A DNA stretch of 64,000 bases from Cyanophora paradoxa CCMP329 (taxonomy: Eukaryota; Plantae; Glaucophyta): assembly GCA_004431415.1 (NCBI GenBank), contig QPMI01000478.1, positions 1 to 64,000 on the forward strand, in the 5' to 3' direction. The notes beneath the pieces are model-generated. The model saw only the letters and a program-made list of their open reading frames with translations, was not told the DNA's origin and did not search any database. Below, piece by piece: positions 10,209 through 58,747 of the stretch (positions within the stretch are counted from its first letter, which is position 1; every line of letters begins with the position of its first letter). A program made the position numbers and the translations under genes.

Positions 10209-13200
10209 ATGCAGACGCATGTGCCATCGCATCAATGCATATGGGCACGGCCAACGCCCTCTAGATCTGCAGCTGCCCATGCATATGGCCACGAAGATGC
10301 GCATCACGTCGGCGCCAGAAGCAGCAAGAGCAGGGGCCAGCAGCACAAACTCGACGGATCGATATCAGACAGCCGCGGTCTCTCGCGATCGCCGAAACGC
10401 CTTCGGAATTGCAGAAGGCAGAGCTCACCGGCGCGGCCGACTTCCGGCCGGGCGGTATGCATCCCAGCGCTTCTCGCGGTAGCGCTTGTGCTTTTGGCGG
10501 CGGGCAGCCCCGTGCAGGCGACCGGTTCGTGCATGCTCGCGATCGTGTCTAGAGATGTCGGACTCGTTTATATCATTTGTGTGCACATTCGCCCCGGGGC
10601 GTTGGCGTTAACGCTTTTGGATGGCGGGGCGCCTTTGCGCACATCATAGTAGGGGCAGGGCCTGACCTTATCGCCGACGCCGTTCGATTCGAATTCGTTA
10701 ACGTTTCTATTGTTGAGCTACTGATGCACGTGATGTGTGCATTTGTACGCATGCGCAGATGAGCCCGTTTTCACCGACGTCCCTCAGCTCGGCGAGCCCG
10801 TCACCCCCAGCGATCATAATTTGATCTGCGGTCAGTGCTCTTTCAATGGCCTCGAGCTCATTTAGTATCGCACCTATTCGCAGCTGCAGCCGCGTTCCGC
10901 TAAATGCGCCGTCTGTGCGCAGACTCGGGCCTGGATGCCAGCAACCCCGTCTACTACAGTGCGATGTCGCCCACCAACAACCCGCAGAATACATTATAGC
11001 GTCGCACCCGCGCGCCAATTTCGCCGATTGTCATGCCGATCCTGCAAACACGCAGAGACGAACGCGACGTGCGAGCTATGGTGGCTCTGCTATGAGCCCG
11101 AAGGTGCGATTGCGCTGTTCTTGGGGCCAGGAGCAAGAGCTCGCGATCGAGCTCAATCGCTGATCCCACGCATTTGTTGCGCTTAGCCTGCGGATCGTTG
11201 GAGGTGGCGTTCCTTGCAAGCAACGGAGTGAACTATACCCGTTCGACGCCATTCGTTCCTGGTGCGCCTGCAGATCCGCACTCTGCACGTGATACAGATC
11301 CAAGAGCTCGAGCTCACTATCATAACGTTGCATGAATTGTCTATTCGATGATCCGATGATCGCGCCGCCAGATCCTGTTGAGTGGGAGGCGACACCGAGC
11401 CTTCCAATCTCAAACGATCCTCTATACCCGGGTCGGCTCTTTAACGTTCCCACAAATCGCAGTGTCGGGTTGTCTACTCATGAAAGTTATATCAGGCTTC
11501 ACAATCGTCAAGTTCCGCTTCCGGGTCGGATTCTTGCAGAGCACGCGCGTTAACTGGCAGCCACTGTCCCGCACGCTTGTCGCAATGTGAGCAGATTGGA
11601 GCCGAGTCTGAGATCGCAATCGCGAGAGCGATGGCAAGCTTAAGATAACATGACGAGGCGATGACTTGCATCTGTTGCGCAGGTGGCGAGACACCCGCGT
11701 CGGTGTTGAGTTCGACAACCGGTTGCGGCGGGTTACGGTCGCGGGGGCGCGCTTCTCGGCTGAGCTGACTTTCGATCGTGCGTGTTAAGGAAGCGACGGC
11801 TGCGCCTGCAAAGGGTTTCGCTCATCATTCCGCTTCCATGCGCAGCTCGCGGCAATGGCCCGCAACTGGACCGCATCACATCTGTCGGGACCGAAGTGTC
11901 CGAGCTGCTGGACCTGAATGACCCTGACGCTACGGTTGGTTTGACGCTACGATCGGCGATTCATATCGATGGCGGAACGGCGCTCACTGTGGTTGCAATC
12001 GCTCGCAGGGATACAAGAAGATGGGCTTCGGACCCTTTCATGTCTATGCCGCCCCCGGTGCTTTTTTAATTGTTCGATTGCAAAGCGGCTCAATTCAACG
12101 AACGCCGGGCTTCTGTTTGTTGCGCAGGGGCGAGCGGCAAGCTGGTGTTCGACAACACGGATGTGCGCGGATCGCGTCTGCTCGTGTGATTCGACTTCGA
12201 CAGCGGGTCTGACATCGCTCGCAGACATCGGCGAGCTGGAGGGTGAAGTACCGGCCCCTGAACTCGACCGGCAACTACACCTACTGGGCCAACAACAGTC
12301 TCTCTTACAAGCGAGCCTTCGCGACCTCTCATTCCGCCCCTCCCTCTTCGAATTCGCTCACACGCTTCGCAGCAACTCCGTCTCGGTCACGTTTAATTAC
12401 TCAGCTGTCATGCCCAGCAACAGCAGACCGCTTGAGATCATCGTCGAGACCATCAACAGCAGACCGCTTGAGATCACGCCGGCGTCGGGCCGCGTTGCAA
12501 AGGGCCGCCGTATCTTCCTGCAAATCACTTCGACGTCGGGCAGCTCCGCCCTGGCAGCTTCCGACGTGCAGGGTGCGCCCTTTTGTGTTTATTGCCGTTC
12601 GTTTCGTGCAAATAATAATCCGGATTCGTCCGCTGCCAGTGGCGCTGTCCGACGCGTCGCTCGTGTCGGCCGCCCCAACGCCCTACTCGACCTCGGGAGA
12701 CACTACAATCTTCGCCTACAACGCCGCGGCGCGCGCTTTGTTTATGATTGAAGTTAAAAGTGTTAAATATGCAGGCCCATACCAGCGCTAGCTGCTTCGT
12801 CTGAAATTCTGAATATACTCGCGCGCGCAGGTCGGCGCTTCGTCGTTCACGGCAACGTGGAGACTGGCTTCGAATGTTGACCTCCGCACCACACCGGAGC
12901 TGGTCGGGACGTGCTCATACGCGATTCTGGACGCCACAGTAATCTGCTCCCCCGCTCGCATCCGAAGCAACTTCGCCCCCTCAAATGTGAGAGCCGATGC
13001 GCCCTACCGTGATTCGCTTCCGCATCATTTTGGCTCACTGTTTTAAATTTGTTGCAGATGACGTGCTTGATTAGCAAGGCAAGCCCCAGTGCAGACCTCC
13101 AAACGACAGACTTTGGGTAAGGATCAAGGAAATTGTTGAACTGCTTTTGAGCGAAGCTGAGATTTTGCGGTGCAGCCTTGGAAGCGTCACCGTAAATCTT

Positions 13201-16200
13201 GGCACTCTTTCGGCCGCCCAGCAGATTGGCGCAACGCAGCAATGGAAGCAAACTTTCCTCGCTACGCAGCCTGGCTCGACGCAGCTGGCGCCGACGTGGG
13301 CAGACGCGGTGATTGATTTGAGCACAGAGAACAACGAGAAGCTCATTCCAGCGTCCCGCTCGCCTGTCGACGTGCTCGAGGTTCTGCCTGCAAGCATCTC
13401 GTACGACAAGACGCGCGTGGCACTCAACACGCGCATCACCGTGACGTTCACATCCTCCGCGGTGCGTTATCAGATCTTTTGCGTCACCCGCGCCTGTTGT
13501 AACAGGTCAATCGGGAACAGAACATCGCTATCACGCCGGCCGATTTCGCGGGCGACATTGGCCTCGACGGGGCCAGCGCCACCAATGTGAATGCGTACAC
13601 GGTCAGATACACCGTCCTGCAGTCGACCGTGCGCTGTCCCGCAATCTAGATCTGAGGTGATGGTTTTACTTTCACGATCTGAGCAAAGCGCAGCTGGTGT
13701 CAGAGGCGGCGCCTCTCACGAAGCTCCGGTGGTCGACGTCATTCGGCTCGTCGTCGATCACGGCGCCGAGTGGTGTGGTCATCAATCTCCGCCCTGGAAG
13801 CTTCGTCCAGACAGCCGAGTTCGACGCCTCGTACAGAGTCTGCCCCGGGATCCGTAGTCCTAGCCTGCAGCTGGCTCCTCGCGATTGGCGTTCGCCCATT
13901 GACGTCGACCTCCCGCCCTCAGTACGTGGCGGCGCTCGTGAACTACGACGCGGACGCGAGCGGCGCGTACCCGGCCTTCTCCGCGAGCGATCTCGTCAGC
14001 AGCTGGTCGGGCGCTGGCGACCCCCCTGTGCACGTCGCGCCGGCCCTTTCAGGCTATTCGGTGCGCCGAACTCGACTCTCGCGCGGCTGCGGGCCTCGCA
14101 ACCCACGCGCACGGCCCCTCACGCGGGGGGGCGGCAGTACGCGGTCACGTTCAAGGCGGCAACGGCTTCGCCAATGACTTTCACGTTGTCCTGGAACACT
14201 GCCGCGATACTCGCTTCCGGTAACGTCTTCAGCTTCAGCCCGCAGGTCGTCATACTCCAGCTCGAGTGCCCCTCGATCAGCGCCCTCGGAGCGACCATCC
14301 GCTGCTTCATCTACTCGACTCCAGAGTCGGCGCCCTTCAACCTGGTTCATGAAGCTTTTGGCCTTCGCATTGGTTGCTCGGTCGAGCTCCAGATCCGCTG
14401 ACTGGGGCGTTCTGACAGACTCACATCCAAGCACCTCGGGTGCAGTCGCCGGCGACTGGCTCCTTCGGCTCGTACGAGGCCGTGATCCCGAACAAATACT
14501 CGTTCACCTATTACAAAACGGACAGGTGAGTCGCCGTTTCTTGCTAGCGAGCCGCCCTGCCAGCTTCCTTTGCGTCCACGTGTGACGGGCCGGGCCGGGC
14601 CGCGGGCCGCCAGAACCTCGCCCACGTCGGCGATCAAGGTCAGCTTCAGCGAGAGCTACATCCAGACGTACCAGACCGACATCCCGCGCGGCGTCCTGGC
14701 CGCGAGCACCTCGATCAACTACGTCGACAGCGCCATCTCCTGCTCCAAGCTCCGCATCCACGCGCTCGGCGGCTCCACGGAGTGCTTCATCCAGAAGGTC
14801 AACGGCGCCGACTTCACGGGCACAGACATCTTCAACGTGACGATCGGGGATCCCCGCGTGACCATGAGCGCCATCACCCTTGTCGACGGCTCGACGGTTC
14901 GCCCCTCCGGATCCCCTATCGCGCCAGCAATATTAATTACAATGGTCGCCTGCGCGCGGGGCTGACGCCCTCGGCCGACACAACAGGTGAGTTTCACCAT
15001 AACGGCACTGTCGGACGCGGCAACGGGCACAGTAAGCATCTCGGCGAACTACATGAACATGGCGGGCGATCTGAACAACGTCTACATCGGCGGTTCCCCG
15101 CTCACAATCACGCTTGTGCGGGCGGAGCTCGCTTGCGACCGCACTCGCGTTGCTCTCTCGCGCTCTGTGTCCTGCAACCTTACGGCCACTGCGGGGAGCT
15201 CAGCACTGGAGCTGACAGACTTCTCGAGCTCGGCGACATTCCCTGGCGGCACCGCTACGATCTCTAGCGCGCTCACTTTCACAGCAGCGCCGTCGACGGG
15301 CAGCCCGAGCACCATCGCCGTCGGATTCGCCACCGGCGGCCCGAGCCTCACCTTTGACGTGGACGTTGTGGAGGTTCAAACAATCTCCTGCGCTAACACG
15401 CGCCTGCTGCCCGGCTGCCAAACTGTGTGCACGGTTGCGAAGGGTGCGGGTTTGTACTTATCTATATGCGCACACTTCGCTTGAGATCGCCGGCGCGGCC
15501 CGGGCCCGCAGCTGCCGGCTCCCCGGATCTTCTCGTGACGGACGTGGACCTCGTGGCTCCGCCGCTGGGCACCTCTCAAAACCTCGCGACTGCAGCTGGC
15601 GGGGCGCTCGAGTTCGTGTATGAAGGTGAGCGCCGACCGCGAGGGGCTTTTGCAGCACAGAGTAATTATAAACTGTTTTCGCATCTGCGCGCAGCTGTGC
15701 TCGGAAACGGAGACACTGGAGTATCTCTTGGGATCGCCTACGGCTCCTCGATTGATGGTTCATCTGTCTCAACGACCGGAAAGTCGATCACTGTAAAGTC
15801 GGTCAGTGCCTCATTTTGATACTTCGTGCTTCCGAGCTCTGTGTTCAATTCTCTCACCCTCAACTGGGCCAGATCTCTACGCTTGGCACGCTGCAGTGCG
15901 GCCAGACATCGTTCGACAAGTACAGTGACTTCAAGCTGTTGTACGACACAACCTACACCTGCGCCCGTGCGTAAAACTCTTTCGCAATATCATTTCACGG
16001 CCAGTCGTAATTTTGCAGCAGTGTCTCCAATTAACGGGTCAGCGGCGCTGCAAGCCAGCGATCTGCAACTCTCGTCCAATGGTTCAAGCACAACCTTCGC
16101 GTCCACTGCGAGCGACGGCAGCGGCGGTCTTACCTTCACGGCGAAGCCGACGCAGGGCGGGGCCGCGACCTGGTCCATTGGCCTCGGCAGCTGCGGGGTG

Positions 16201-19200
16201 GTCGAGCAAAAGACCATCCAGTACCTCACGAAGCCCGTCCTTAGCTGCCCTGAGGTCACGGCTCTCGGTGCTAAGGTGCCTTGGAGCTGCACGCGACACG
16301 AAGGAATTGCGCTAATGCCTCCCAGATCGGCTGCACACTCGACGGCCGGTCGACGTCGCCGGATTTCCTCGCGAGCTGGGTCACACCGCTGGCAATTGAC
16401 GCTCCTGCTGCTGGCACGCTGACGCCTTTCTCTCTTGTTTCACCGGGCCTGTATGCGTTCAACTTCACAAACACGAACGGGTGCGCGCACTCTTGTAGCT
16501 GGGAACCTGTCTTTGCCGCTGACGTATTCTAACGCCCTTGCCGGTGCACAGGACGAATTCCGTAACTTTCCGCACGGAGTTTGAGCAGAGCATCATCAAG
16601 ACCAGCAAGTCTTCGACAGACGTCAACGGCACGGTCACAACGACGTCTCAGTCGGTGCGAAGTCGAGCTCATCATGATCATCGAGCGGCCTTAGACCAAC
16701 GTTAACAGACCTGCTTTGCGTCGCGCAGATCTCAATCGGATCAACGACTGTTCTGTACGTCGCGGCGTCGATGGAGTGTCGGAAAACGACAATTCTCTCT
16801 GGGGCATGGGGGCGCTGTTACTTGAACGCGACAGGAAACAGCGCGCCTTTCCCCAGGGCCGACATCTTCAGCGTGACATCCTCCAACTCTAGCCGCGTCT
16901 CAATCGGTTCTCGCACTCTCGTTGATGGCACGAATGGCGCAGCGGTGCGCGTGCACCCTCATTGTTGTCTTTTTCCGGTTGTAAATCCAGCGACCTTGAG
17001 CTGATTCATGCTTGCCTGACAGGTCCAGTTCGACGTGATCGCGGACGCACGTGCACCCGTTTCGACGGTTTCTGTCAGCGCAAGCTTCGCAGACCTCGGG
17101 GGCTTCAACGTGGGGAGCGTCACGATCGCGGGCTCGCCTGTCTCCGTCAGCGTCGACCGCAACCTCGTCAACGCGACCATCTCGTGCGCGGGATCGCGCA
17201 TGAACGGCGACGGCGGCCGCGTGCTCTGTACGATCAACAAAACCGACAACTCGGTCCCCTTCCCCTCGAGCAACATCTTCGCGCTCACGTCATCGGTCCC
17301 AAGTAAAGTCACCTTTGGAGCCATCTCTCTTATCAACAGCGGAACGACGGTGCTCAGATTGAGAGCCTAGTTCGAATTCTATGCTGCAAAATTAATAGGT
17401 TTATTTAATTTCGCCGTGCGCAGGCGCAATTCGAAGCTATCGCGGTGGGGGGATCTGCGCCGGGCACGGTTAGTATCACGGCCGAATTCACAAATTTGGA
17501 GGAGCACGTTTTGAAGGCATCGAACATCGGCGGGGTGGCGACCGTCACTCTTCTGCGCGCGACGGTGACGTGTACGCCGGCTCGCGCAGTCGTCACAAAC
17601 AACATCACGTGCTCCGTCGCCCCGACCGGCGGCAGCGCGGCGCTGACCGATGCCGATTTCACTGCCTCGGCTGCCTTTGCCGGGGGAAGTGCTGAAATTA
17701 GCGGCTTGGCTTTCTGGAAGGTTCCTGCGCTCGGAAACCAAACGGCCGAGGTTTCGTGGGCCAGCGGCGGCGGCAAGTTGACCACGCACGTCGTTATCAT
17801 TGGTGCCTCTTCGCTCAACTGCGCCAAGTCGCGCCTTCAGACCGGCTGCTCGACTCTCTGCACCATTTCGAAGGGCAAGCGATTTCATTCGCGAACTCTG
17901 CCCGCACACTTTTCATGATTGCTCTCCTGCAGCGCCGACCTCTCCGGCTCTGCTGGCGACCGATGTGACGCTCGGGGCCGTCACGCACGGCTCTGTCACA
18001 TCGGTCGCCGCCAGCAGCGGCGACCTTACCTTCACATACACGGGTAAGCACGCAAGAACATTCGCTACAACACCGTGAGATGCATCTGACTTCGACGTAT
18101 CCCAGGCGGGCTGAACGGCGGCGACGCGGGCCAGAATCTGACGTTCGCATGGGTGAACACGAACGGCGTCCTGGGCAACGCCATCGGCGCTTCGACGGCT
18201 GGCATGTACAAGACCGTGCAGACGATTTCGGCCATGCTAATCTGCGGCCTGCCTCCGGCGGCGTCCTTCAAGCTGCTCACCAACCGCCAGTCGACGTGCA
18301 CTCGTGAGCGCTCTCGAATTCGCCGCCGAGGTTTCTCTGCGGTGTTTTCCGCATGCTAGACTGAAACTGTCGTTTAGTTGTCAGGTCGTCGGGATCGGCC
18401 AGTTTACTCGCAAGCGACGCCGCGCTGGCTTATTCAGGCCCGAGCACGACGTTTGGCAGTATGACAGCGGCATCAGGAGGCAACCTGACGTTCACTGCAA
18501 CTGCGACAGTCGGAGGCACAGCGCAGTGGAACATAACCCTGGCAACTTGCGCAAACCCTGCAATCGTCACATCAGTGGACTATCTTGCTCCTTTGAGCCT
18601 CTCATGCCACTCTCTCTCTTATGTGGGGGCCACCATTCGCTGCAACCTAACCGTGACTGCGGCATCGGCGCCGTTCCGATCGTCGATTAGCAACCCGTAC
18701 GTTGAGTCACCAGAAGCCGGCACGATTGCAACCGCGTACACGAGCTACGCCACATCGCCCGAGTCTTACTACTTCCACTTCTCGAACACGGCCCGGTGAG
18801 CGCATTGCAATTCCAATAATCCAAGGTTGACAGCAACGCTGACGAGCTACCGCTGCCAGTACGCCGACTGCTACCGTGAAAGTTGACTGGCTCGCGACCG
18901 TCATTGGAACGGCAGTCAACAGCACCTACGTTGCGGTGCGCTTCCACATTAATTGCCCTCATGATCATGCACTTTTTCTTATTACGCATTTGTGATAGAC
19001 TTCCGCGGCCACGCCATTCAAGGTTTCCTACGTGAATGCAACGCTGTACTGCGCCGCTGGGATGATCAACGCGTCTTCTGGAACGACAACTTGCTTCCTC
19101 AACAAAACCTCTGACAGCATTCCATTTGCAGATGCGAATATCTTCGTGCCTATTGCCAACGACGATCGCATTGCCGTCGGCTCTGCTTCCCTTGTGTCGG

Positions 19201-22200
19201 GCATGGCTGGCAGCCAGGTATCGCCTAACCTCGAGCCCGCCTAGCGCGCGCTAGCGCTTTGCCTGATTCGGCGATTCAACTCCGCAGGCATCGTTCACGG
19301 TCACTGCTGATCCGTACCCGAATCAAGTTGGCGCCGTCTCTGTTTCGGTAGGATGGTCGGGATTGCAGGCCGTTAGCACGCTTCCGGCGAATGTTATGGG
19401 CTCGCCTGTCATCACATTGAAAAGGCCCACGGTCGGCGCGTCGCTGACTTGCCTTAGCAACCGTTTGTATGTCGGCGACGCCGGGGCTCAAGGGCGCATC
19501 CGCTGCTACATTAACGCGACCGGCGGCACTCTCTTCCCTGCCCAGTCTGCCACAAGCGTGAATGTCATGTTCAGTGTGACCGCCAATGTCAGCAACGTGC
19601 TGCAAACGATCAGCGTTTCTTACGTGCCCGATTCGTACACGACTCTGACCATTCCCAACTTTGGTTCTATGTCCGGCTGGACGGCTGCGACGTTCGAGCT
19701 CAGAGGATACGGCTTAGGCGGTATTGGCGCTGCCACCGCCATCAGCGTCTCGTACGCCAACATGGGCCCCGGCTTCAAGAACGACGTCGACACCACCCCA
19801 GTCTCAAACTCGCCGTATGTCATCACCGTGATAAAGCCCAGCGTGAGTTGCACCACTACCCGTATCGCTCTCAACAAGCAGCTGTCCTGCTCGATCTCCC
19901 CTGCCCCTGGAACTCCCGCCATTGTGGCCTCGGATTTCGCTTCCACAGTATCAATCAACTCGTACCCTGCTGCCAAGACCGTCAACCTTGAAGCACTAGC
20001 TGCCGGTTCGATCCCCTTCAAATGGACGCCGACTGCCGCGGGATCGGCGACCACCGGCGACTACGGAGACCAGGGCGTAAGGACCCTCACCGCCACGCTT
20101 GCCAATGGGGGAACGATCACGACGCAAGTGTCTGTTATCTCATTCGACTCTAATTCGTGGACATGCGATACCGCACGCATCTCGGCGTCTTGCACAACAA
20201 TCTGCAGGCTTAGGCCGAGTGCGTTCGGCGTTCTTGAAATCAGTCTTGCACAATTTGCCCTTGATTGTGAGAAGCTTTTGCAAGCTGACTTTTTCTCCAT
20301 GCAGTCATATACTCCGCCGGCAACTCGCGTTCTGCACAGCTCATTGCAACGGACGCCGTCTTTTCAGCAACCTACGGAAGTATTCTCGCCACTTCGACAG
20401 CAAGAGACCCTGGGCATTCGTATGACCACATAACGGTCACTTACTCCGGTGACTGCAAGCTTTTCTGGCAAAAGAATGTCTCGCTCGATGACTGAACATG
20501 ATTGATGGGCAGGCGGGCTTGGCGGTGGCAACAATGGTGACTCTTTGAAAGCCGCCTACTCGACTTCGGTTGGCGGGGACGACTCGACCTCGATCGCCAC
20601 TAACAATGCTACTGTAAAAGTGGTGTGCTAATTGTTGCAGCGGCATGGACTTGCTTTGGTGCAAAAGCTGCGCGTACATTGATTTTTATCGCGCTCAAAG
20701 GTTTGGGCACACAATCTTCGCTGTGGATCTTCGAATACTGGATCGTTCTCGAACGGAAGTGCAAGCAGCTTCCGGTTGCTATACGATGTGCAATACGACT
20801 GTATATGTGCGTGGTAGCAGCTTGCAAGAGCAGCCATCGTACGTCTTGAACTGAGTTTACTGCAGACGATAAGGTGGCTGGGTCCGCGGACTTCACTGCA
20901 GCGGACGGATGGACAGTTGGGGGCTGGACGGCATTCGTGTACCCCAGCTCCGCTCTTACTCTCACCTACCCAGCCTCGTTCGGCAGCAGCGTAGCTTTCA
21001 AGATAACACCGAAGGTTTTGGGGTACCAATCATGGTCGCTTTACGTCGGCGACAGCACGTGCAAGACTCCGGGCCTCAAGGTCGCCTCCAAGCAGGTCGA
21101 AGTCATTTCCGTCAGTCTCTCCTGTCCTCAGTCGACTGTGTTCGCTCCGAACGATGCTGGAAATTGCACAATTACAGCCAATGGAATAGTTCCCCCGCTT
21201 CTGCCCTCTTTCTTCAGGCGCAGCTCAGCGCGCGTCGAGTTTGACGAAATGGTCGGCACCGATGCAAACTCCACTTCGCTCACGTTCCGCTTCCGCACGA
21301 AAGCTGGAGCTCCCGACGCGGACAAGAGAATCTTATTGAATCTCAACAACGACCAAATTGCTGTTCCAGACGGATACACGCTTTTTGAGACGTCTCAAAA
21401 CGTCCTTATTTCGTGTACGCTTGCGAGTGGTGTGCGGGTTCCTTAAAACGCTAAGTGGCGCGCAGATGTCAACCCGGCCTACCTTTCGAGCACTTCGGCG
21501 TGCGACAGAACCCGCACAAAGGTACCAGGGCGTCTTCTGCGCGTACTTTAACTTGAGGTGATTTGCTCACTGCGACACTCGGGGAACGCAGAACACAGAG
21601 AAGGTCCGCTGCAAGTTCCGGTCAACGCAGTATTCCGAGGACTTGGCGGATAATCAGTTCACGTGGTCTACCAACCGCACTTCTTCCGTTGGCGATGTGT
21701 CTTCCATCGATAAGCACTCAACATACCCGGCGACGTACAATCAGCTCAATGGGGCGTGGACAGGACCATCTTATATTTGGTACGACGCGCTTGCGTCCGG
21801 TCTCGGCACTGTCGACATCAGCATCTACTACGCGCGCACGGGGGCGCACATCGCCACATACAGCATCACAATTATCGACGCTCAGCTCGTTTGCGACAAG
21901 GCACGCGTCGTGCGCGGCGATGTCACCAACTGCTCAGTCGAGTGCGTTCTCTTGCGTTTCTCTGGGCGCCCTCGATCTGCAGATCCATTAACACACCGCC
22001 ACGCAGGGCGCTTCCAGGTTCTCCGCCTCTTGTATCTAGCGACTTGAGAGCCACGGTTCACTTGTATGCAAGCGGAGGGTCCTCAAACACAGCCAGCACG
22101 TGGACAAACGATGCGCGCACCCTTCATTCTATTTCGTTGCTTCCGGCCACATCTGCATTCGCTGAAGGCGCATGTGCTTGTGCCTGCAGGACCCCGACTG

Positions 22201-34200: not shown

Positions 34201-37200
34201 CGCTTACACGCGCTCGTCGCTTGCCCTCACATTCACGCACGCTGAGGTTGCCTCTTCACAGTACACGTTCTATGTGCGTGGATTTGTAATATATATTCTT
34301 TCGCACGAGCACCTCTGACGTAGACCTCACGGTCGCGCGCTGCAGTTGCGGTGGGCACCGAGCATCGTGCAGGCAGACGCGTTTGGCACAATCGACATCC
34401 CGTCCGTCTTCAGTGTGGACGTCGTTGAGGCCTCGCTCTCATGCACGAACACGGGCCGCCGCGTTCCATTTACGACGATGGCCTGCACGCTGACGCCGTC
34501 CGCGCGCTCGGTCAACCTCCAGACGACGGACGTCGCGGTCGCAGTTGACTCGGGTGCCGTCGACACTGGCTCTGTCACGGCTACCGCTTTGGGCAATGCC
34601 GGCTCCCTCACCTTCACTTACAACCCGCCCGCCACGCCGCTTACAAGTGCGTTTTAACTGCTTTTTGCGCCCGCTATATGTATGCATGCACACGCTCGCT
34701 TAAAACATCGATGTGACTAACGTGAATGCTCGCAATCACGTGCACGCGCAGCTGCGACTGTCCGCGTCAAATACGCGCAGGTCTGCCGTGATCATGATGC
34801 TGCAACGTTTTTTATATGGCGCTTCTGATGCGCGCATGTAGGGTATCGATGGCGTGGAGCAGTACATCGGCAACACCGGAACCGACGATCCGTCAAATAC
34901 AAGGAGCATCACCTTCGTTGCAGCGGACCTTAGTTGTCCAACGGAACGCCTGCGCCTGGGCGCATCAAAAGCTTGCACACTCACGGGCCGAGATGGATGG
35001 ACGGCGCCGATCCTCTCTGACTTGTCCGACTACGAAGTAACCGGCGCGGACCTGCTCGACTTTTACGGCACTCGCGCCGTGACATCTGCTACGCTCACGT
35101 CGCTTCAAGTCAGGGCAGACAAAGCTGGCACCCTTGCCACGCTCAAGGTTTACTACAGCAGTGCTGTCATTGCGACTCGAACTGCTCTAGACACGTCTGC
35201 TTCGGTGCGCTGAATGAATTCGCGCTGCAGTTTTTCGCGTGGCTTTAATGACGTCGACATTGCCTTCTGTGAACGCGCAGTTTACGGTCATCGAAACGCG
35301 TGTACTCAATCCGCTGCTCTGCAACACGACCCGAATTGCTGTGTCTGGTGTAGCCCGCTGCACGCTGTTCAAATCAGATGACAGCGCAGCGTTCCTTCCG
35401 GATGATTTCATTGGTACGCTGGCGGTTCATACTTGTCTGCAGGTGACACCATTGATATTGTTTGACCACGATCCTGCGTCAGATCAATACAATGTGCCCG
35501 CGTCGACCCGGGACCCGGTTGTCACCGCGCTAGGCCTTGACTTCGACTTCGAGACAACAATCGCAAACGGGTGAGACTTCGAATTCTGTCCAGAGGGCGT
35601 GTGTGTGTGCGTGTGAGCTCGGGCAGCTGACGCTGAGCGTCTCTGCAGGCCGACGTACACGTATACGCTAACGTTCACGTCGGGCATCGGAGGCGGGGAT
35701 GCTGGTTCGACGGCAATCACAATTATCGAGGGCGACCTGAGCTGCACGCCGCAACGGCGTGGGCCGAACACGACCTTTGCATGCCGGATCACTCCGACCC
35801 CGAACAGCGCGGCGCTCAAGCTCACTGACATTAGCGCACCTTACACAAATTCGCCGCTGCTGGTCGTCGGGCCGGCTCGGACGGATGCGAAGAACGCGTC
35901 CATCATCTTGTTCGAGGGGACGACCGTGGATGCTAACACAGCTTCCATCCTCGTTAGCTACAGCCCCGCGGTGCGCTGTGGACACCGCGCAGCGCGCCTA
36001 CGACCAGCACGTACATGTGCTAAACTGTGAACGTTGTTCCTGCAGCTTGGCGGCCCTCCGCTTGGCGCGTTTGTGTGCGTTTAATTTCAGTTTGCTTTTG
36101 CTGAATTCAAATGCATGGTATTTATTGACATCGCGGCCTCTCTCTGCAGCATGGCCGTCGTGGGGGCGCAGCTGGACTGCGATCCTCGCGTGCGAGCTGG
36201 ATCGAGATTGGCATGTCGAATCTTGCGAGCGCCCAACTCGCCGGCGCTGCTCACAACGGATGTTTTCGTTGCCGTGTATCGCATTGGCTACCGGCAGCTT
36301 ACGAACCGTCGCGCCTTTACGCAAGCCGGCAGCAACCTCCACACATACCTGCAGATTCCGCCCGCGCCACTCACTGGCGAGATGGGTATTGTGTCAGTTA
36401 ACTACGGAGGTGGCAAGCTCGGCACGTGGTATCCGATCGCCGCGCTGAGCTCCAACTTTACCGGTACGCTCGCACAATTGCTCGCCATGGACAATTTTGA
36501 ATGTATGATAATTAATTCTGTGCAGTTATTTGGGGCACTCTCAGCTGCAAGGAGCCGCGTCGCCGCGTCAACTCCATCGAACAGTGCTTCATCGACCGCG
36601 CCCCTCTCTCTTCTCCGCTTCGGCCGACGGACCTCGACGTTCCTTCGATGCGGGGGCAGATCTCCGATCCCACCACGCCTTTCGCACAAAACGGCTCGGT
36701 GCGCGTAGATGCAGCATCTGGTAGACGATCCACAAAAGACTAATCTTGTTTCCCGCAGCTGGCAATCAACGTCACGATGTCGACATACGGATCGGTTTCG
36801 CTCTCAGCGTTCTGGTCGGAGTCCGTGGACGACGGCCAGGCGCAGATCCCGTCGACGTACAACGTCACTGTGCTGGACGGGCGGGCCTCGTGCTCTCCGA
36901 GCCGTATCGCGGTCGGCTCCAACGTGAGCTGCGTGGTCCTGCCGACCCCCGGCTCGGCGGACCTCGTGCCCGAGGACGTGAAGCCCGCCCCTGTGCCCGG
37001 CGGGTACATCGCGTCCGGCGATCTCGTACCGATCAACGGCAGCATCACGTTCAGCGCCCTCGCCGTCGAGGCGAAGGACGCGGTCCCTGTTTCTGTCTCC
37101 TGGAGCGACGGCCTCGACGGCGGCGAGCTCGCTGCTCAGCTCGTCGATGTCATTCGCGCCAATCTGAGCTGCTTGCCTCGTGCCCGGGAGGGCTACGCAA

Positions 37201-40200
37201 CACCGTGCCTCTTGGCCCGGATCGGCCAGTCGCCGGCACTCGAAAGCACCGACTTCAAGACCCCCGTGACGTCCATTCCTTCTGCCGCGAGCTTCGGAGG
37301 CTATTCAGTCAGCGCGGACGGGCTCGGCGGCCAAGACTTTACTTTCACGCCGGCTTGGCTTCGGTCGTCCGCGACAATCGCGGTATCATACGACGATGCC
37401 GTCCAGCCGACGTGGCCCGATGTTCAGGTCGACAGCAGCCCTGCCACGGTCGTCTATGTAGGGGGCGCCCTCTCCACGAGCACCGCCCGCGTCGCTGTCA
37501 ACACAACCGCCTCGTTTTCGATCGAAGCCAAAGTCAACGGATCGAAGCTGGAGCTTTCTGACATCGACCCGCTTTCCTTCGATCCCGACGTTGTTGGCGA
37601 CTCGGGAGAGCGTCTTTCCGAGGACGTAACCAACTCGGGCTTGGCGTACACGTACCGGTTGGCGGCGCCGGGCCTGGCGACCATCTCTGCGGCGTACGCG
37701 TCCATTATCGGAGGCGGAGCGGTCGACGGCGCGCCTTTGGTGTCCGTGCTCAGCGCGTCGCTGACGTGCTCGAGTTCCCGCGCGGCTGTTGGATCTGTCA
37801 TCACGTGCAATATTGCGAGGGTTGGTGCCTCACCGGAATTCCTTGCGAGCGAGCTCGTCCTGGCCGTTAGCCCCTCCAGCGTCGCCACTGTCTCGGCCCT
37901 CGAGAATTCCACGGACCCCGACTATCAGTTTACGTTCACGGTCTCGATCGGGTCGGCTGTGGAAGATGCAAGCATTTCCGTCACCTACGCCGCTTCCATC
38001 GACGTAGACACACGTAACATTGCAGGCTCGCCGCACGCATTTGTTGCCATCGGTGCGGCCTGCAAACTCTTGTCTCAAGTTATGTGCAGAGTCTGAATTT
38101 CGATTTGGCGCCAGGGGCAACGCTCTCTTGCTCTCCACTCCGTTTGCGAGTTGGAGCGTTGTCTGTGTGCGAGGCTGCGGAAATCGCTGACAGCCCCCAG
38201 CTTCAGGAAGACGACTTGATGTGGGTATCTAACGCAGCTGGCACGTACAGCAGCGTTTACCGGAAGGACAGCGGAGCTCTCGCAGTCAATTTCACAGCGT
38301 CCTCCGTGACGGACGGCTCGGGCGCTTTCTTAGTGGTCCGACCTGCAATTTGTTCTCTGCCTTTTGTCTGTCGAGGCAGCGCTATTGATATATTGATATA
38401 AACTCCGACAGCTGCGCTACTCTTCCGATCGGGATCCTGCGACGGCTGTCATTGGCAATCTTACTGTTTTCGTTATCGACATGACTGTCTCCTGCACGCA
38501 TGCGCGTGTTGTGCCAGGTGTGACCATCAATTGCACCGCTACACGAGTTGCTGGTAGCGCCGCCATCGCTACCACCGACGTTCAGCCTGCGTACTCCGAG
38601 CCATTGGATGCGGCAACTCCCTCTGCTTGGACGGAGATCGGAAGTGCGGCGGACCCGCAGCTGTTCTTGACGTTCACCTCGGTCACGCCGGGAAGCGCCA
38701 CCCTTTACTTCCCATCGGAGGGCGAGGTCGGGCCGTCGTCAAAGAACCACTCGCTTGATATCGTTGCAGCCGATCTCGCGTGCGACCGCTCGCGCTTGGC
38801 CCTGAACGGCACCACTGTGTGCACGCTGGCGCGGACGGGCAGCTCTCCAGCGCTGACCGTGGATGACTTCGAAGCCCTCTCTGTCGCCCCGACCGGCGTT
38901 GGAATCTTGTCTGCACTCTCCGAAACGGACGACGGCGCCGGCAACGTTTTCTTCACGTACCGAGCCACGGACCCTACGACCAGCCAGACCGTGTTCGACG
39001 TCCACTATGCAGCAGCGATCGACCCGTCGACAATGGCCGTGCCTCGAGATGTTCCGGCAGCAGCAGTTGTGCTCTCGGCGACCATCCACTGCACTCCCGA
39101 CCGGCTCGCCATCCGCGCGCCTTTCACGTGCACCCTCGCCCCTGGGAACGACACTTGGCCCGTTCTGGAACCCACTGACTTTGCACCGCTTGCCATTTCT
39201 CCTGCGGGGGCGCAATTCAGCGCTATCTCTTCGATATCAGACGGAAAAGTGAACTTTGACGTGGCCGTGACCGCCCAGTCGCTGTACCCGAACCTCACAA
39301 TCTTCTGGGGGTCTACCGTGCACGATCTGCCCGACATCCTAGCAGTCCCGCCGACTCCTCTGACGGTTCTGAGCGCGAATGTGTCCTGCTCGAGCAGTCG
39401 CCAGACGGTTGGCGCGACCATTTCGTGCGAAATCGAGAGCCTGGACACGTCCCCCAAGCTAGAGCTCCAGGAATTCACGATTTCAATCGAGCCACCAGTC
39501 GGTGAAATATCGGCCGCCATCGAGTCGAATGCAACCTCGAGCTCCAGCCGTCGCCGGCACATCCTCGAGACGAGCGGGTTGTATACGTTTACAATCAAAG
39601 TGCGGATCTTTTGAACGCTAAAATAAAAATGCAATTATAGATTTCTAACAAACGGCACGCAGATCACGAACCTGACGGATGGGGCGAGAATCAGCGTGCG
39701 ATATGCCGCGGCCATCGATCCCGAACAGAAGGTCCTCCAGGACGAGGCGCTGCCCCTCGTGTCGATCGGTCTGTGACGCTTGCGTTTCTATATCACGGCT
39801 CCAATTGCAAGCTGAAGGTTTTGATTCGCAGGCGGCGACCTGACGTGCTGGAACTTGCGGCGTCGTCTCGGGGCGATCACGGAATGCGAAGTCAAGAAGT
39901 TAAACGGCAGCGCGGACTTGCTCCCTTCGGACGTAAACAGGCTCCCGTGCGCCGCAGGCAAGTACACGGATATCAGCACAGTATCCGGGGGCGGCCTCTC
40001 TTTCACGTTGATCGCGGATGCCGTGACTTCCGACGAGGGAGAGAGCCTCGTCGTCCAATACGCACCAGCGGTCGACCCGACGGAAGCCCAGCTCGGGCCT
40101 GCGTTCAACGTTGTTGTCATTAACGCCGCATTCGCGTGCACGAAGTCGCGCATCGCGGCTTACTCGGCCTTTAACTGCTCGGTCACCGCTCCTCCGTCCA

Positions 40201-43200
40201 GCGCGTCTACCCCGACCTTGCTCTTGTCTGACTTCGACTCGGAAGCACCGTCCGCTCCTCTGGGTTATGTCGTGGGCCCCAGCTGGGCGCGCACAGCCGA
40301 CAACACGTTTACTCGTCAGTTCACGGGGGCTGTCGCCTCGTCGACGGTGCTCCACCTGCGGTGGGCGGAGAGCGTCGGCGGCGGAGGCGCTAACGTGACA
40401 GTTGATGTTGTCGAGGCTCGAATTGTATGCCCAGCGCGGCGGGCCGTCGGCGCGACAGCTGCCTGCCTTCTAGAACGCCTTGGCGCGTCGCCAGCGCTGC
40501 AGGCATCCGACTTCGCGGCACCGGTCGCGGCCCCGGCGGGCTTCGGCACTTTTGGCGCTCTCATAGTGGACGCTTCCGGGAACGTCGCTTTGCCATACAC
40601 GACATCAAGCTTGACTCCCGCGACCGAGATTACAGTTGTCTATTCCTCTGCTGTAGACGACCGGTCAGCTCCAGTGAATGGCTCCGGCATTAGCATTGCC
40701 ACACTCGGCGCCGGGTTTTCTTGCCCGCAACGCCGCGCTGTCGGCTCTGCCATCTTGTGCACACTCGTTGCCGCCAGCGGCTCCGCCCAATTCCAGGATG
40801 GAGATCTGCTTGCCGCCTCCTACGAGCCCGCGGCATCCATCGCAGAGGCCATCGTTTCCGTGAACGGCTCTTCCGCCGTTCTCAGCGCGAAGTTGGTCGC
40901 TTCGGCCCTTTCTGTTCGCGTCACACCGCGATGGAGCGCTGCACTGGCGACCGATGATCTTGTGGCTATGTCGTCTGTAGCCGCTTCGGTCGGCGTCGTA
41001 GGTCTGCTTGCCCGTCGTTCATGTTCAGTGATCGTGACTGATCGTGCGCCGCTCGCGATCGCAGACGCAACCTTGAAGTGCGACAACAGCGCCAGCATGG
41101 AGTACGGAAGCAGCATCGCCTGCTACGCTGAGCCTGTGGCGCCATCTGAGATCCTGCTGGCGGACTTCCAGGCGCCGTCACTAGTCATGGCCGCGAAATA
41201 CGTGACAATGACAGCGCTCGCACCCGCCTCGGATGGGCGCTTTGTGTTTACGCTCACCGGCCAGCGCATCACCGAGGAGAACATCGCTACAGTGGGCATC
41301 AGCTACACAGAAGCCATCGATCCGTTCGCGAGCCCCGTGCGAGGGTCGCCAATGCGCTTCTACGTCAATCGCGTCACAAGTGCCGAGGGCGCGATGAGTG
41401 TCGTCAGCGCGCGGTTCGCAAACGACGGATACGAAATCTCAATTGTATTCTCTATTGCCAGCTTGAGCAGTACCGCAACCGTGCCCGCGTCCGCTTATTT
41501 CTCGGAGGAAAGCGTTGCAGCTCTCGGGCAGTTCTCTACGTGCTCCTGGACATCAGCGAACACGCTGACGTGCCAGACTTCCGCGGACGCCACACTCCTT
41601 CCGAAGTCCGGCATCGTGGTTTCCGTGCCCATCCTTGCTGCAGATGGCTCCGGCCGCTCCTTCACTGGACCCGTTGTCATTGACGAGCCGCTCGTGCCTC
41701 TGATCCCTTCTCTGAGTGTGGATGCCGCCCCAAGCATCCCTTCGTGCCGCCCGATTATAGTGAGCGTGGTGAAGACCTTTGGCTTGTCTGTTCGTCCTGG
41801 TCGCTTCCAGTGGAGCTGCGCCGACAACGATACATGCGCCATTTCGCCGCGCGTTCAAGAGGCGATCGATGCAGCGAACGCAAACAACAGCAACCAGCTC
41901 TCCATTCCCGTTGAGGCTCCAGCGGACAAGACCTATCGCTTCGGGATCGCGATCTCAAACTTCTTCGGTGCAGTCAGTGAACAGACCATCGTATCTGTGT
42001 ACAAGGTATGCATACGCAGGCTCTAGATCTATAGCGCGAGCAGTTATGCCAGCACTGTCTTTCGTTCGATTGACATGCGCACCCTCTTTCGCACGATCAG
42101 TCTGCCGGCTTGGTAAGACATACTCCTCTTTTTTCGCCTTTCTATTCTAAATCTGATGGGCGGTTGTCAGCCTCCTTCTCTATTGATCGATGGCGGGTCA
42201 ACTGTTTACACGAGAACCACAGCCCCGACTACAATCAAGTTAGTGGTTTAAATTTCTTATGACGCATGCGTAATTCCAGCTGACGTTAACGTTGCGACAG
42301 GGCAATCGCACTCCGGACGCAATGCGAAACGGTAGGCTTATTTATATGACATTTCAACTGCTATTTGAATGCGTTGAGCACCTCTAAATACACTGTTTTA
42401 CACAGGACGATCCAGCGTTGCTTTCAGCATTGACGTCAGCCCAGCGCTCGGAAGGTACGGTCTGCTGTCCAGCTCTATTGTTAGTTCCGCGCACGTACCC
42501 GAGCTTGAATTGTAAGCCGGTTTATACGTGCAGGCATCGAAGTGCGCTGGGCCTTGCCTCCGAAGCTGCAGGCCTTGGCTCCGTCGACGGTCGACCTCAC
42601 CCGGCCTACGCTCGCCATCCCGCGGGGGACGCTGCCGCCGGGAGAGTCTTTCACCCTGACAATGACAGCCACGGACCAGAAGCAGAATCCGCCAACTAAA
42701 TCGACAATCAGCGTCGAAGTCGTCGTCCTGGAGCAGCAGCTGCAGGCCGTCATCACTGGCGGAGATCGCGTTGTTCCGCCGTTCGATCCGCTCGAACTCT
42801 CCGCGGGCTCCTCCCGCGATCCCGACTACGAGGACGGCAGCGCGGCCCCCGGAACGGCGTCGAAGCTTTCCTACACGTGGACAGCCCTTGACGCCTCCGG
42901 CAAGGCAGTCTACACGTCGCCCCGCAGCACGGACCCCTCACTCTCCGTCACTCCGTCCGATGCAGGTAAAATGCCCTAAAGCCGATTACTAGTAGTCATT
43001 AGCATTTCTCAACGTTCTTGCAGGCTTGCAGCAGGGGACTGCGTACACGCTCGTTCTCTTTGTGGAAGCGGAGCGCGCGGGGGTACTCCCGTCCTTATCT
43101 TACGCGAACGCCACGGCATCTACCGTCCTCCGCGTCGGCGCGGGCTCCACGCCCGTGGTCCAGGTCCGCGTTCTGATTCGAATTCCCTGACCAGCTGCAG

Positions 43201-46200
43201 ACCGGCGTTCGCGACAGATCACCAGCACGCGCCCGGCTGACACGTTGTTTGCAACCAAGTTCCCCATCCAAATCCGCTGCCAGGCGCACCAGACGGGTAA
43301 CGCCAACTCTGACCGCGACATGGTCTTCGCTTGGAGCGCGCCGAACGGCGAGCCCGAGCTGGCGAACATATCGACGCTCGCTTCGCGCTCAATCCAGGAC
43401 TCTAACTCCGTCTCAACTCTGTCGCTGACCGAGAAGTCGGGCATCGAGCTCAAAGCAGATCGGATCTACATCATTCGATGCTCTGCTTACACTCAAGCCG
43501 GCGGCATCGCTTTCGCTGGTGAGGCTGTTCCCATTGTTTCCAATCGAAACGCTGACGTCAACTGGTTTTCTTAAGGTTCTCAAGACGTTTCTGTTCGAAT
43601 CATTTCCGGTTCGTGGCTTCAGTCGATCGCGAAGAATCATAGGATATGCATAAGTATTCCGAGCTCACGTTAAAGCAGGCCCGAAACCAGGCGATTGTTC
43701 GGTGGATCCTCTTGCCGGCATCGCGTTGGAGACACCATTTGTCGTAACGTGCTCTGGTTGGACAACGAGCTACTCCTCCGAGGCGACGCTTCGTTATCAG
43801 CTCAAGGTGTGATCGAGACCCGCGGCCGCGCGATCTGGTGCAATTTCAGTGTGGAAGGCTGATCGTGATGTGGCGCAGATGGTTTCTTCTGGCGGCGAGC
43901 TGGTGACAATCACGCAGCCGCAGCCTCCGGCTGTGATGAGAACGTGCGTCGCTTCTTCCGTCGTGTCACTTCTGTTTAGAGCTGAACGAGCCGGCGCTTG
44001 ACCTTCTCGATCAGGACGTTGCCCGCTAACGAGGGAGGCACCGGCAACCTAACCCTCGTCATTGTTGTCGTTGATGAGTTCGGATCGGAAACCGGTGCGC
44101 ATTGGCTTCGTTCAAAGCTCGCTTATGCTGACGGAAAGTGCGCACTGCGTAGAGCACCGGACAAACGTCGCTGTGCGGAGCCAGCTTCTGGAGGCCCTGG
44201 CGGGCTCTCTTGCTGCTGGAGACGAGACGAAGACTCAGCAGCTGGCGAAGGATTCGATCGCAACGCTCCTAAAGCAGGCGGGCAGCGCGATCGCCGCGAC
44301 CGAGGGCGACGGGGACCGCGAGGGGATGATCGGCGCCACTGTCAACGCCGCCTTGATGGTCGCCAATGTAATGAACAAGGGTGCGCTAGATCTAGAGCTG
44401 CGCGCAGCGCCTGCGGACGCTCTACGACGAGATCGCTGATCTATAGCTTCTCTCGCAGCCTTCGCCACATCCAAGGACCCCACCGTGGCGCTGACGAAGA
44501 TCGATGATGCCGACGGGACCATTCAATCGCTCCTAGCCCCGCTCATCAAGGCGGTTAAGAAGATTACGAGCTCAAACGACACCACAAAGGGCGAGGTAGG
44601 TTGAAATATTAAATACCTCTCAAATTAGGGGGCGTCGGACGTTCGCCGGGTCGCGATCGGGCGTCTGAGCGCGTGCGTGCGGTCGCAGATTTTCCAGACG
44701 ATGTCCGCTGTGTCAGTTCTCGCCGAAGTTGTTGTCCGGTGAGCGATACCAGAACTGAAATGATGGGAGGGCTTGAAGTTTTTACCGGTGCACGTGCCTT
44801 TCCTACAGGACCTCGACTCAGGACGTCCAGGCACAACTAGCGGAGCTGCTGAGAATTCTCGTCGACACGCTTCACGACTGCACGTATCTGGACGAGGCCA
44901 AAGGCATGATTATGAAAACTACGGACGCGTTTGTCGGGTGAGTAAATAATCTGCGATGTTGACGCTCTCCTGCGCTTGCACTGCAATTTACTCACTGTTT
45001 TATCAGATCCCCTGACTGGACCCGGTTGTCGGGCATCGTCCAAGGCATCCTGGATCGCTTCATTGAACGCGCGCTCTCGTGCACCGCGTGCGGCACGGGC
45101 GATGAGATGGCGAGCTCGAAGCGAATCACGCTCGTCTTTGGCCGCGTCTGCTTCTCCACGGCTTCAGCGTCCAACACCATGGCCATCAATACGAATGGCG
45201 AAGGCGGGCAGGTTTCCATTCCTTCGGAGCTTCAGGCGCTGGCCCAGAAGACCTTGGGGAAGACCACAGACGGCTTGCCTTTCAAGTTCTCGACGTTCAA
45301 GGTCCGCATAACTTTATATTCCGACTTCGTGCCCGGGTGTTGACTCCGCACCAGCGCAATCCGTTTGAGGACTCTATCAACGTTAACAGTTCGGCTTCAT
45401 AGTGCGTTCCGAATGAAAAAAATATAATTTCTTATACGTTGTGTCCTCTAATGCTCCATCAGCAACATGTCGCGTCGCGCTGGGGTCGTCGACATGGAAA
45501 TTCCCGGATTTCCCGTCTCCGGCCTTTCCGAGCGCATCCGCTTCCGCTTCCTGCTCTCGAACGGGTCCGCTCTTGATTATATGTATATCAACATATAAAT
45601 CTTATGTCACCATTTGCATTCTCCGCGCGTTCTTTGACGCCGTCTGCGCAGCACCGCGCCTGAGCTCCCCTTGGACCTTGTATTCTTCAACAAGACTGCC
45701 GGAACGTGGCAGCGGTGCTCCAACGTCACTATCGAGATTCGGGGCACTGCGTACTACGGAATCGGCTCGTGCGACCACCTAACGCCCTTCGTGCGCACAC
45801 ACCACGCGCGATCCTGTATCGACTTGCCACAGAATGCTCACATCGGATTCCTTGCGAAAACGCGCAGACCGTCGGCGCGCCGCCTGCCGGGACCGACGTC
45901 CTGCAGGCCCCGATCCGCGGCGAAATTGTCGCCTCGTCGCAGAATTCCGAGATTCCTGCCAGCAGCAGCGTGAACCTCGGCGCGGCGATCGCTGTCCCGG
46001 TCGTGCTCGGCATGCTCGCCATCGTCGCCGTGTCGGTCTTCGTCGTGTATCGCCACATCAAGAAGCGCGTGCACATGGTTCCGCCGGGAGGCTTCGTCCC
46101 CGTCGTCCCTGGCGCCGCGGAGGGCTGGAGACAGCGCGCGCTTTCGCCCCGCGGCGGGGCTCCGGTGGGTGCTTACGCCGTCGAACCGGATATCGAGGGC

Positions 46201-46296
46201 GGCCATGCGTACGGACGCGGCTCAACGGCAGCTCTGTCGGGGCCGTATGCCGCCCCGCAGCAAGCCCGCCGTCAACCCCTGCATATTGTCGTCTAA
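10209..46296 (+). CDS. Giant multi-exon type-I cell-surface protein: signal-like segment, dozens of two-Cys filamin/Ig-like repeats, PKD/REJ-like module, GAIN/GPS motif, single TM helix, short cytoplasmic tail
   Basis: Hydrophobic N-terminal segment CIPALLAVALVLLAAGSPVQAT (~10457-10523). Continuous + strand exons separated by short GT(GC)-AG introns carry the recurring module LSC-x2-4-R-x3-G-x4-C...SP-x-L-x3-DF...G-x-L-x-FTF. REJ-like LAIPRGTLPPGESFTLTMTA...LQAVITGGDR...LELSAGSSRDPD...LSYTWT (42.6-42.9 kb) and PKPGDCSVDPLAGIALETPFVVTCSGWT (~43680-43763). GPS FFNKTAGTWQRC...GSCDHLTPF (45683-45790). TM LGAAIAVPVVLGMLAIVAVSVFVVY followed by RHIKKR; stop at 46294-46296. The start codon and single-gene status are inferred. 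Confidence 0.8.
28620..34300 (+). repeat. Four-copy higher-order (~400 aa) tandem repeat within the giant protein
   Basis: Recurring landmarks FG (28752), FGPALDFS (30276), YGPALDFS (31557), FGPAIDFS (33050). Each is followed by L-x-C...G-x-F-x-F[TS]C, LSC-x-P-x-R[VI]A-x-G[DE], V-x-x-[IV]-x-C-x-PG-x-R, and [FW]KYG in the first three units. Confidence 0.85.
42230..44100 (+). other. PKD/REJ-like module of the giant protein
   Basis: REJ-type motifs (L-x-I-P-x-G-T-L; V-I-x-G-G; L-x-L-x-A-x-x-S-x-D-P-D; Y-x-W; P-x-x-G-x-C-x-V-x-P-x-x-G-x-A-L-x-T-x-F-x-V-x-C-S-G-W), recognised by eye rather than by HMM. Confidence 0.75.
45683..45790 (+). other. GPS autoproteolysis motif (C-terminal end of a GAIN domain)
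   Basis: FFNKTAGTWQRCSNVTIEIRGTAYYGIGSCDHL|TPF matches the GPS pattern W-x-x-C...C-x-H-L|T-x-F; the codons for CDHLTPF lie at 45770-45790. Confidence 0.75.
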
Positions 46297-47172: not shown

Positions 47173-51994
<4,822 letters not shown>

Positions 51995-52048
51995 CGCTCG
52001 TCTTTTTTTCGAGGGGGCTGTCCGCGAGGCGGGTACACGGCAGAAGCG
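51995..52048. promoter_or_regulatory. Ultra-short bidirectional promoter / 5' UTR interval between RTCB and the SDR gene
   Basis: RTCB ATG at 51994-51992 (-) and SDR ATG at 52049 (+), leaving 54 bp between them. Confidence 0.55.

Positions 52049-53956: not shown

Positions 53957-53988
<32 letters not shown>

Positions 53989-57159: not shown

Positions 57160-57196
<37 letters not shown>

Positions 57197-58716: not shown

Positions 58717-58747
<31 letters not shown>

Follow-up and report, generated by a model that had tools for sequence, protein, structure and literature searches.

A putative giant single-pass surface protein with REJ and GAIN-like regions encoded across 36 kb of the Cyanophora paradoxa genome

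Introduction

In sea urchins, the combination of a REJ domain, a GPS and one transmembrane (TM) helix has been published for SpREJ1, SpREJ8 and SpREJ9, in which the GPS stands just outside the membrane, a single TM helix is predicted, the tail is short and there is no channel domain (PMC1934368). These animal proteins are 1,450-3,274 aa long, hold lectin, EGF or partial REJ sequence in their N-terminal part, and carry a GPS that standard domain models recognise. In polycystin-1, a tandem array of immunoglobulin (Ig)-like domains, a REJ domain and a GAIN/GPS region with an HL/T site beside the first TM helix (slashes mark cut or splice positions throughout) are found together with PKD repeats, a PLAT domain, a channel-like C-terminus and 11 TM helices, whereas adhesion G-protein-coupled receptors (GPCRs) carry a seven-transmembrane (7TM) part after the GAIN domain. 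GAIN domains also occur in Dictyostelium and Tetrahymena (PMC3321182), and REJ with GPS and 6-7 TM helices is found in the brown alga Ectocarpus (PMC4700764). Here we describe a locus of the glaucophyte Cyanophora paradoxa CCMP329 at positions 10209-46296 of a 64,000-nucleotide stretch of contig QPMI01000478.1 (assembly GCA_004431415.1, positions 1 to 64,000, forward strand; hereafter the window). The locus is probably one gene for a type-I surface glycoprotein in which a rod of repeated modules stands on a REJ-GAIN-like base that would cleave at HL/T; the whole may serve as a filament.

The Cyanophora protein shares with SpREJ1, SpREJ8 and SpREJ9 a REJ domain, a GPS-like motif, exactly one TM helix and a short tail. 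It differs from them in lineage, in size (8,500-9,100 aa), in its N-terminal part, which consists of 56-59 Ig-like modules that Pfam does not recognise, and in a GPS that standard domain models likewise miss. With polycystin-1 it has in common the tandem Ig-like array, the REJ domain and the HL/T site beside the first TM helix, but the 11 TM helices, the PLAT/LH2 domain after the first of them, the channel-like C-terminus and the PKD repeats are all absent. The adhesion GPCRs ADGRG6, ADGRG3 and ADGRG1 (PDB 6v55, 7qu8, 9s9u) are the sole PDB matches of a profile of its candidate GAIN subdomain B, and its post-cleavage strand is predicted to lie inside the sandwich; unlike these receptors, it has a single hydrophobic helix with no TM-like open reading frame (ORF) downstream in place of a 7TM part, the E-values are weak (0.0012-0.032), and two of the four GPS cysteines are present. 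A predicted protein of the jellyfish Sanderia malayensis, P0022, resembles the Cyanophora protein in having Pfam-recognised REJ and GPS and a single C-terminal TM helix, but it is 1,754 aa long, places a SEA domain between GPS and TM helix, and lacks the two-Cys modules. Because REJ, GPS and one TM helix are thus already known together in SpREJ1/8/9 and in P0022, the class is not new, and the suggestion of the original prediction, made from the sequence of the window, that this could be an undescribed class of GAIN proteins was too strong. The novelty lies in the lineage and the size, in an Ig-like module restricted to that lineage, in the existence of a multi-gene family, and in a corrected version of the public gene models.

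A probable single gene across 36 kb

The plus strand from 10209 to 46296 is occupied by an intron-rich gene of about 36 kb with roughly 100 exons. ORFs on this strand between 10 and 46 kb are interrupted every few hundred bases and shift frame, the pattern to be expected where short introns are numerous, and exon chaining finds a coding signal that is unbroken on one strand across the locus. The exon models were made with a purpose-written exon-chaining program that used a three-periodic Markov coding score trained on repeat matches, together with splice-site weight matrices learnt iteratively, and that disallowed in-frame stops. A conservative model comprises 97 exons and 8,550 residues and ends at the TAA at 46294-46296; a model that also drew on homology hints comprises 96 exons and about 9,100 residues. 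The length is given as a range, 8,550-9,100 residues, because the two models differ and neither is exact at 22-28 kb. Homology searches were made with single exons or with public proteins, and the spliced model served for coordinates, the hydrophobicity scan and the counts of modules and sequons. With a low intron penalty the program over-split long exons and added tiny end exons, and the homology-hint model reads through some introns and diverges at 43.9-45.3 kb from the public gene model for the 3′ part of the locus (tig00020824_g14231.t1, 2,242 aa; P0002). The last 887 residues of our own model are identical to P0002 without gaps, the two having been built independently, and the stop at 46294 is common to P0002 and three of the four exon-finder settings. 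The original prediction had described continuous same-strand exons over about 36 kb and estimated several thousand residues, possibly 8,000 or more, and both points agree with these models. The roughly 95 introns are short (median 73 nt), and their splice sites follow an unusual GC-rich consensus (donor G/GTGCGC, acceptor GCGCAG/).

In the public annotation, the locus is represented by at least two, probably four, models (tig00020824 g14228 to g14231). P0013 (g14228) maps to 12410-19241 and P0002 (g14231) to 36648-46296, and the numbering suggests two further models between them. A single match to the hidden Markov model (HMM) of the repeated module, over profile positions 1-83, spans the splice 19217/19288, where g14228 ends by reading into the intron, and the ATG at 36648 that opens g14231 sits mid-module, inside an HMM match of profile positions 2-91. 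P0002 also skips obvious module sequence near 38.1-38.5 kb. Two long paralogues, each annotated as a single model, can be followed along the locus: P0004 (7,713 aa, on another contig) is collinear with 12834-43809 at 40-58% identity and crosses both annotated boundaries, and P0003 (7,530 aa) matches from the short 5′ exons at 10749 to the GAIN/GPS exons up to 45859. Since the boundaries cut modules and P0004 and P0003 are collinear with the locus, the public models are best regarded as fragments of one gene; judged from its sequence, the locus is very probably a single gene. In other parts of the Cyanophora annotation, giant members of the family have probably been broken up as well.

At the 5′ end, a putative first coding exon (10209-10524, plus strand), recognised by ORF translation and splice scoring, begins with an ATG at 10209 and contains a signal-like hydrophobic segment at 10452-10505, AVCIPALLAVALVLLAAG, followed by VQA/T; splicing of its phase-1 donor after 10524 to the acceptor at 10759 keeps the reading frame. 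The segment with its VQA/T looks like a signal peptide, and P0009, a paralogue, shows a similar hydrophobic stretch at its N-terminus. With about 81 residues ahead of this segment, the start codon is uncertain: translation may begin at another position, or the segment may act as a signal anchor. The N-terminal non-repeat region, composed of many short exons, follows at 10759-14100 on the same strand. Residues 10-199 of P0003 are collinear with exons at 10749-11940, and P0004 aligns from 12834 onward.

REJ domain, GAIN-like region and membrane anchor

The REJ domain (Pfam PF02010), by which the locus resembles the PKD1/REJ family, extends over 41400-44242 on the plus strand, the Pfam-matched part being 42587-44242 (P0002 residues 1361-1755). 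The match on P0002 has an E-value of 1.6e-26 and scores 93.4 bits against a cut-off of 25, over profile positions 35-429 of 452, and the exon at 42509-42976 matches by itself with E 2.8e-12. The Cys-rich N-terminal start of the domain is probably encoded in the last part of the long exon 39832-41967.

Beyond the REJ match, about 200 helix-rich residues are followed by about 180 strand-rich ones that end in ...LDLVFFNKTAGTWQRCSNVT...YYGIGSCDHL/TPF. The helical stretch (44153-45061, plus strand) is a candidate GAIN subdomain A, on the basis of AlphaFold2 helices of low confidence; the predicted local distance difference test score (pLDDT) of the chain in ESMFold2 is about 80. The beta-rich stretch (45062-45790, plus strand) is a candidate subdomain B, as indicated by a family profile, hhalign and residue invariance. 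Together they measure about 375 aa in helix-then-strand order, a size and order that fit the definition of GAIN, namely some 320 aa divided into helical subdomain A and beta-sandwich subdomain B, with the strand behind the cut buried in the sandwich. The GPS-like motif, ...FFNKTAGTWQRCSNVTIEIRGTAYYGIGSCDHLTPF, contains a W, a C and then C-D-H-L at 45770-45781 and reaches the donor after 45790, the next exon opening with TVGAPP. The predicted scissile bond at 45781-45782 (plus strand) falls in the HL/T position, with Leu encoded by 45779-45781 on one side and Thr encoded by 45782-45784 on the other. The sequence at 45782-45975 (plus strand), which includes the intron 45791-45867, encodes the predicted post-cleavage strand TPFTVGAPP together with a stalk some 35 residues long, and the motif ends about 35 residues ahead of the TM helix. 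The consensus W...C...C-x-H-L-T-x-F therefore stands directly before the first TM helix, as in the PKD1/REJ family.

Several comparisons point to a GAIN-like region. In six paralogues that are otherwise 28-38% identical, the W, both C, the H, the T and the F are invariant. A family profile of the strand-rich part (A2), compared with PDB sequences, gave four matches at E-values up to 10, all of them GAIN domains of adhesion GPCRs (ADGRG6, E 0.0012; ADGRG3, 0.015; ADGRG1, 0.032), and the alignments end at C-x-H-L-T-x-F. By hhalign, the motif was aligned onto the Pfam-validated GPS of the jellyfish P0022 with E 3e-4. Among language-model neighbours, ranks 2-4 are GPS/GAIN clusters (0.82-0.89) and rank 1 (0.90) is an unrelated cluster, so that this comparison serves as a lead only. 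A word-index protein search with P0002 residues 1740-2242 and with P0014, limited by its length window and word index, returned the queries themselves and one paralogue.

The structure was also predicted by two-chain ESMFold2, in which P0002 residues 1724-2097 have a pLDDT of about 80 and residues 2098-2106 (TPFTVGAPP) dock as a strand against residues 2028-2031 and 2061-2066. The docking score of the strand is 0.78 against 0.45 for the best control, with runs agreeing in at least 62% of contacts and a partner pLDDT of at least 43; the mark so reached was attained by 51 of 78 solved complexes and by 2 of 108 mismatched pairs. In published GAIN structures, the last strand lies embedded (PMC3321182). 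The docking result speaks for likeness to GAIN, not for cleavage, and may reflect the model's memory of GAIN structures. Overall, the region is quite probably GAIN-like, an assignment that is supported rather than proven, and self-cleavage at HL/T, predicted by analogy with characterised GAIN proteins, is somewhat favoured.

The TM helix, LGAAIAVPVVLGMLAIVAVSVFVVY, followed by RHIKKR, was located by a hydrophobicity scan at 45976-46050 (plus strand). It is the sole strongly hydrophobic 19-mer in P0002 (Kyte-Doolittle peak 2.81), and in our own full-length model one further window, a module strand, is barely over the 1.8 cut-off. The tail that follows, predicted to be cytoplasmic, is 81 aa long and rich in Pro, Gly and Ala; it occupies 46051-46296 (plus strand) with its TAA at 46294-46296, is the same in our model and in P0002, and holds no recognisable domain, nor does any Pfam domain follow REJ. 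In the 1.7 kb 3′ of the stop there is no TM-like ORF, and the GC content is 43-54% apart from one window of 62%; this AT-rich sequence (46297-48000) is probably a 3′ untranslated region plus intergenic spacer. Proteins from five other loci (P0001, P0003, P0006, P0014, P0023) end alike, with a GPS, one helix and a short tail. N-x-S/T sequons number 115, compared with 70 +/- 8 in shuffled sequences, and all precede the TM helix, with none in the tail. These features fit a type-I, N-out topology. The features that the original prediction had named (a signal-like segment, dozens of two-Cys beta-rich modules of about 100 aa, a REJ-like region, a helical stretch before W-x-x-C...C-D-H-L/T-P-F, one TM helix with a tail of about 80 aa, no channel or GPCR module, a non-animal lineage) all hold for the locus.

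The two-Cys Ig-like module array

Between the N-terminal region and REJ, at 14111-41339 on the plus strand, lies an array of two-Cys modules of about 95 aa. The module HMM was built from the window itself, by jackhmmer seeded with 38763-39071, and its matches (by jackhmmer and hmmsearch, down to E 2e-34) lie on the plus strand only, from 14.1 to 41.3 kb; a search of the open frames counts 56 and one of the spliced model 59. Some 40 modules stand head to tail, with linkers of 6-49 residues, over the last 3,900 or so residues before REJ, and the paralogues carry 14-64 copies. Each module has two nearly invariant Cys, which are residues 12 and 25 in the sequence used for modelling. Between 22.4 and 27.9 kb, about 1,200 residues give module matches below threshold only and no Pfam match, and the same is true of P0004, with which this part is collinear despite the weak module matches; a block of diverged modules or a different type of domain may stand here.

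At the level of sequence, the module stands apart from described families. None of 131 modules reaches the curated Pfam cut-off, the best being two weak Big_12 matches (E 0.005), and the module profile finds nothing significant among PDB sequences; with Pfam run on single exons, most long exons have no match and the REJ exon alone was recognised. An AlphaFold2 model of the module, from an alignment of 131 sequences, is a confident beta-sandwich (pLDDT 83.6, predicted TM-score 0.76). Foldseek with this model returned generic Ig V-type matches alone, at a TM-score of about 0.5. An exhaustive structural aligner placed InvE and FdeC (Z 9.7), InvD (9.1) and invasin (8.7) closest, the root-mean-square deviation from these four being 2.5-2.7 A over 94-97 residues, or 2.5-3.1 A once a Salmonella STM14_2015 chimera is included, with filamin repeats next at a Z of about 8. 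As modelled, the module has an Ig-like fold; Z values of 8-10 may reflect a common fold only, not descent. The Big domains of invasin/intimin-type adhesins and the filamin repeats thus have a similar fold, and long tandem arrays of such domains form rod-like adhesins, but no relation to them is seen at sequence level, and the Cys pair of the Cyanophora module is placed early (positions 12 and 25).

Family, taxonomic spread and surrounding sequence

A search of 1.84 billion representative proteins with the exon at 39834-41966 gave 21 matches, the strong ones all from the EukProt set of Cyanophora paradoxa. The locus belongs to a Cyanophora gene family whose members share the C-terminal cassette, and the module family has been seen in Cyanophora only among those representative proteins. 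A literature search found no paper joining Cyanophora paradoxa and REJ. Elsewhere in the Cyanophora annotation, g13367 and g13368 on tig00020710 share one 90% cluster.

Within the window, the REJ-GAIN parts of four family members gave no tblastn match at 47-64 kb; ten ORFs at 60564-64000 have no Pfam match, and that stretch shows no motif of the C-x-H-L-T type. Flanking ORFs at 1-6 kb and 48-63 kb also have no Pfam match. The window as a whole is GC-rich eukaryotic DNA. The gene itself has a GC content of 53-62% (10000-47000), much lower than that of the flanks, which is about 70% (65-74%; 1-6000 and 48000-60000), and GC skew is strong in the flanks (-0.26 at 4-6 kb, +0.27 at 48-50 kb).

Alternative readings of the locus

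Several observations weigh against one gene for a giant self-cleaving filament. The public annotation divides the locus into separate models, the exons between 22 and 28 kb are imprecise, and the start codon and signal peptide are uncertain. Among the RNA runs listed, none matched the 3′ 6 kb, and two RNA-labelled runs (X5, X11) yielded no contigs on it. Runs X3 and X4 were discarded as RNA evidence, being genomic DNA whose contigs cover introns without joints. At the protein level, Pfam GPS (PF01825), one of the checks that had been proposed with the original prediction, gives no match on P0002, nor on the GPS segments of six paralogues when E-values up to 10 are allowed; of the four canonical GPS cysteines, only two remain. 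The AlphaFold2 monomer of P0002 residues 1700-2194, from a five-sequence alignment, is poor (pLDDT 46), and Foldseek with this model returned mostly designed helical repeats, latrophilin GAIN appearing only at ranks 10 and 13 with TM-scores of 0.10-0.12, too low to be of use. If the public annotation were right, the locus would hold several independent genes, and only the last, of 2,242 aa, would have REJ, GPS and TM helix. The separate annotation of P0013 and P0002 favours this division, and the RNA runs gave nothing on the 3′ 6 kb by which to decide; it is nevertheless improbable, since both annotated boundaries (19217/19288 and ATG 36648) cut through a module, the alignment to P0004 passes straight over them, paralogues of 7,500-7,700 aa with identical end-to-end order are annotated as single genes, and P0002 leaves out obvious module sequence. 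The same lack of RNA contigs, in the two RNA-labelled runs, would suit a silent or decaying copy of the family, although missing contigs are no proof of silence. That the locus is a pseudogene is more improbable again, given about 100 exons without a frame break up to a stop shared with the public model, and 40-58% protein identity to P0004 along the whole length.

With a single intact gene as the preferred reading, the question becomes how its C-terminus is built and whether it is cut. Further downstream exons that add TM helices would make the product a polycystin-like multi-pass protein. Nothing was found in favour of this, and it is extremely improbable in view of the TAA shared by the public model and three of four exon-finder settings, of the AT-rich 1.7 kb that follow without a TM-like ORF, and of the five paralogues at other loci that also finish with one helix and a short tail. 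A possibility of more substance, though not the favoured one, is that the architecture is as described and the GPS-like motif is a non-cleaving remnant, leaving the chain uncut as in some GAIN-bearing adhesion GPCRs. The failure of Pfam GPS to match, the two absent cysteines, and the H-M-T that the paralogue P0003 carries in place of H-L-T would all be in keeping with such a remnant. In adhesion GPCRs, a consensus GPS motif alone is no guarantee of cleavage. A published study is consistent with this (PMC12488864). On the other side, six paralogues that are otherwise 28-38% identical all keep the H, T and F at the scissile bond, as expected of a working site.

Proposed working and significance

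Read from the outside in, the predicted protein begins with a signal-like N-terminus and a head free of repeats and continues with a rod of 56-59 modules, the REJ domain, the GAIN-like region, a stalk, the TM helix and the tail. At an assumed 4 nm or so per module, the rod would measure a few hundred nanometres. By analogy with polycystin-1, SpREJ3 and adhesion GPCRs, the GAIN-like base may cut itself at HL/T in the secretory pathway (PMC1934368, PMC3321182). The embedded TPFTV strand would then hold the two fragments together, and force applied to the rod could detach or shed the giant N-terminal one. In a protein that lacks 7TM and channel parts, any signal would need to travel via the short tail or partner proteins. 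The simplest reading would be a filament, adhesive or coat-forming and possibly force-sensing, that has a break point built in, rather than a channel or a GPCR.

A wider proposal, tentative and on balance rather unlikely, is that glaucophytes possess an expanded family of giant self-cleaving, sheddable filaments, and that REJ-GAIN-TM is an ancient pan-eukaryotic module for force release or shedding which predates the coupling to 7TM or 11-TM parts and appeared first in single-pass adhesion proteins. The locus bears on whether GAIN autoproteolysis began in simple membrane-anchored adhesion proteins, and it extends REJ with a GAIN/GPS-like region, free of a channel or GPCR part, to Archaeplastida. 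For the reference glaucophyte itself, an annotation that breaks up this gene, and probably other members of the family, would skew gene counts and protein-size statistics. A single-pass GAIN protein in a culturable alga would also offer a test bed for cleavage and force-dependent shedding without 7TM signalling.

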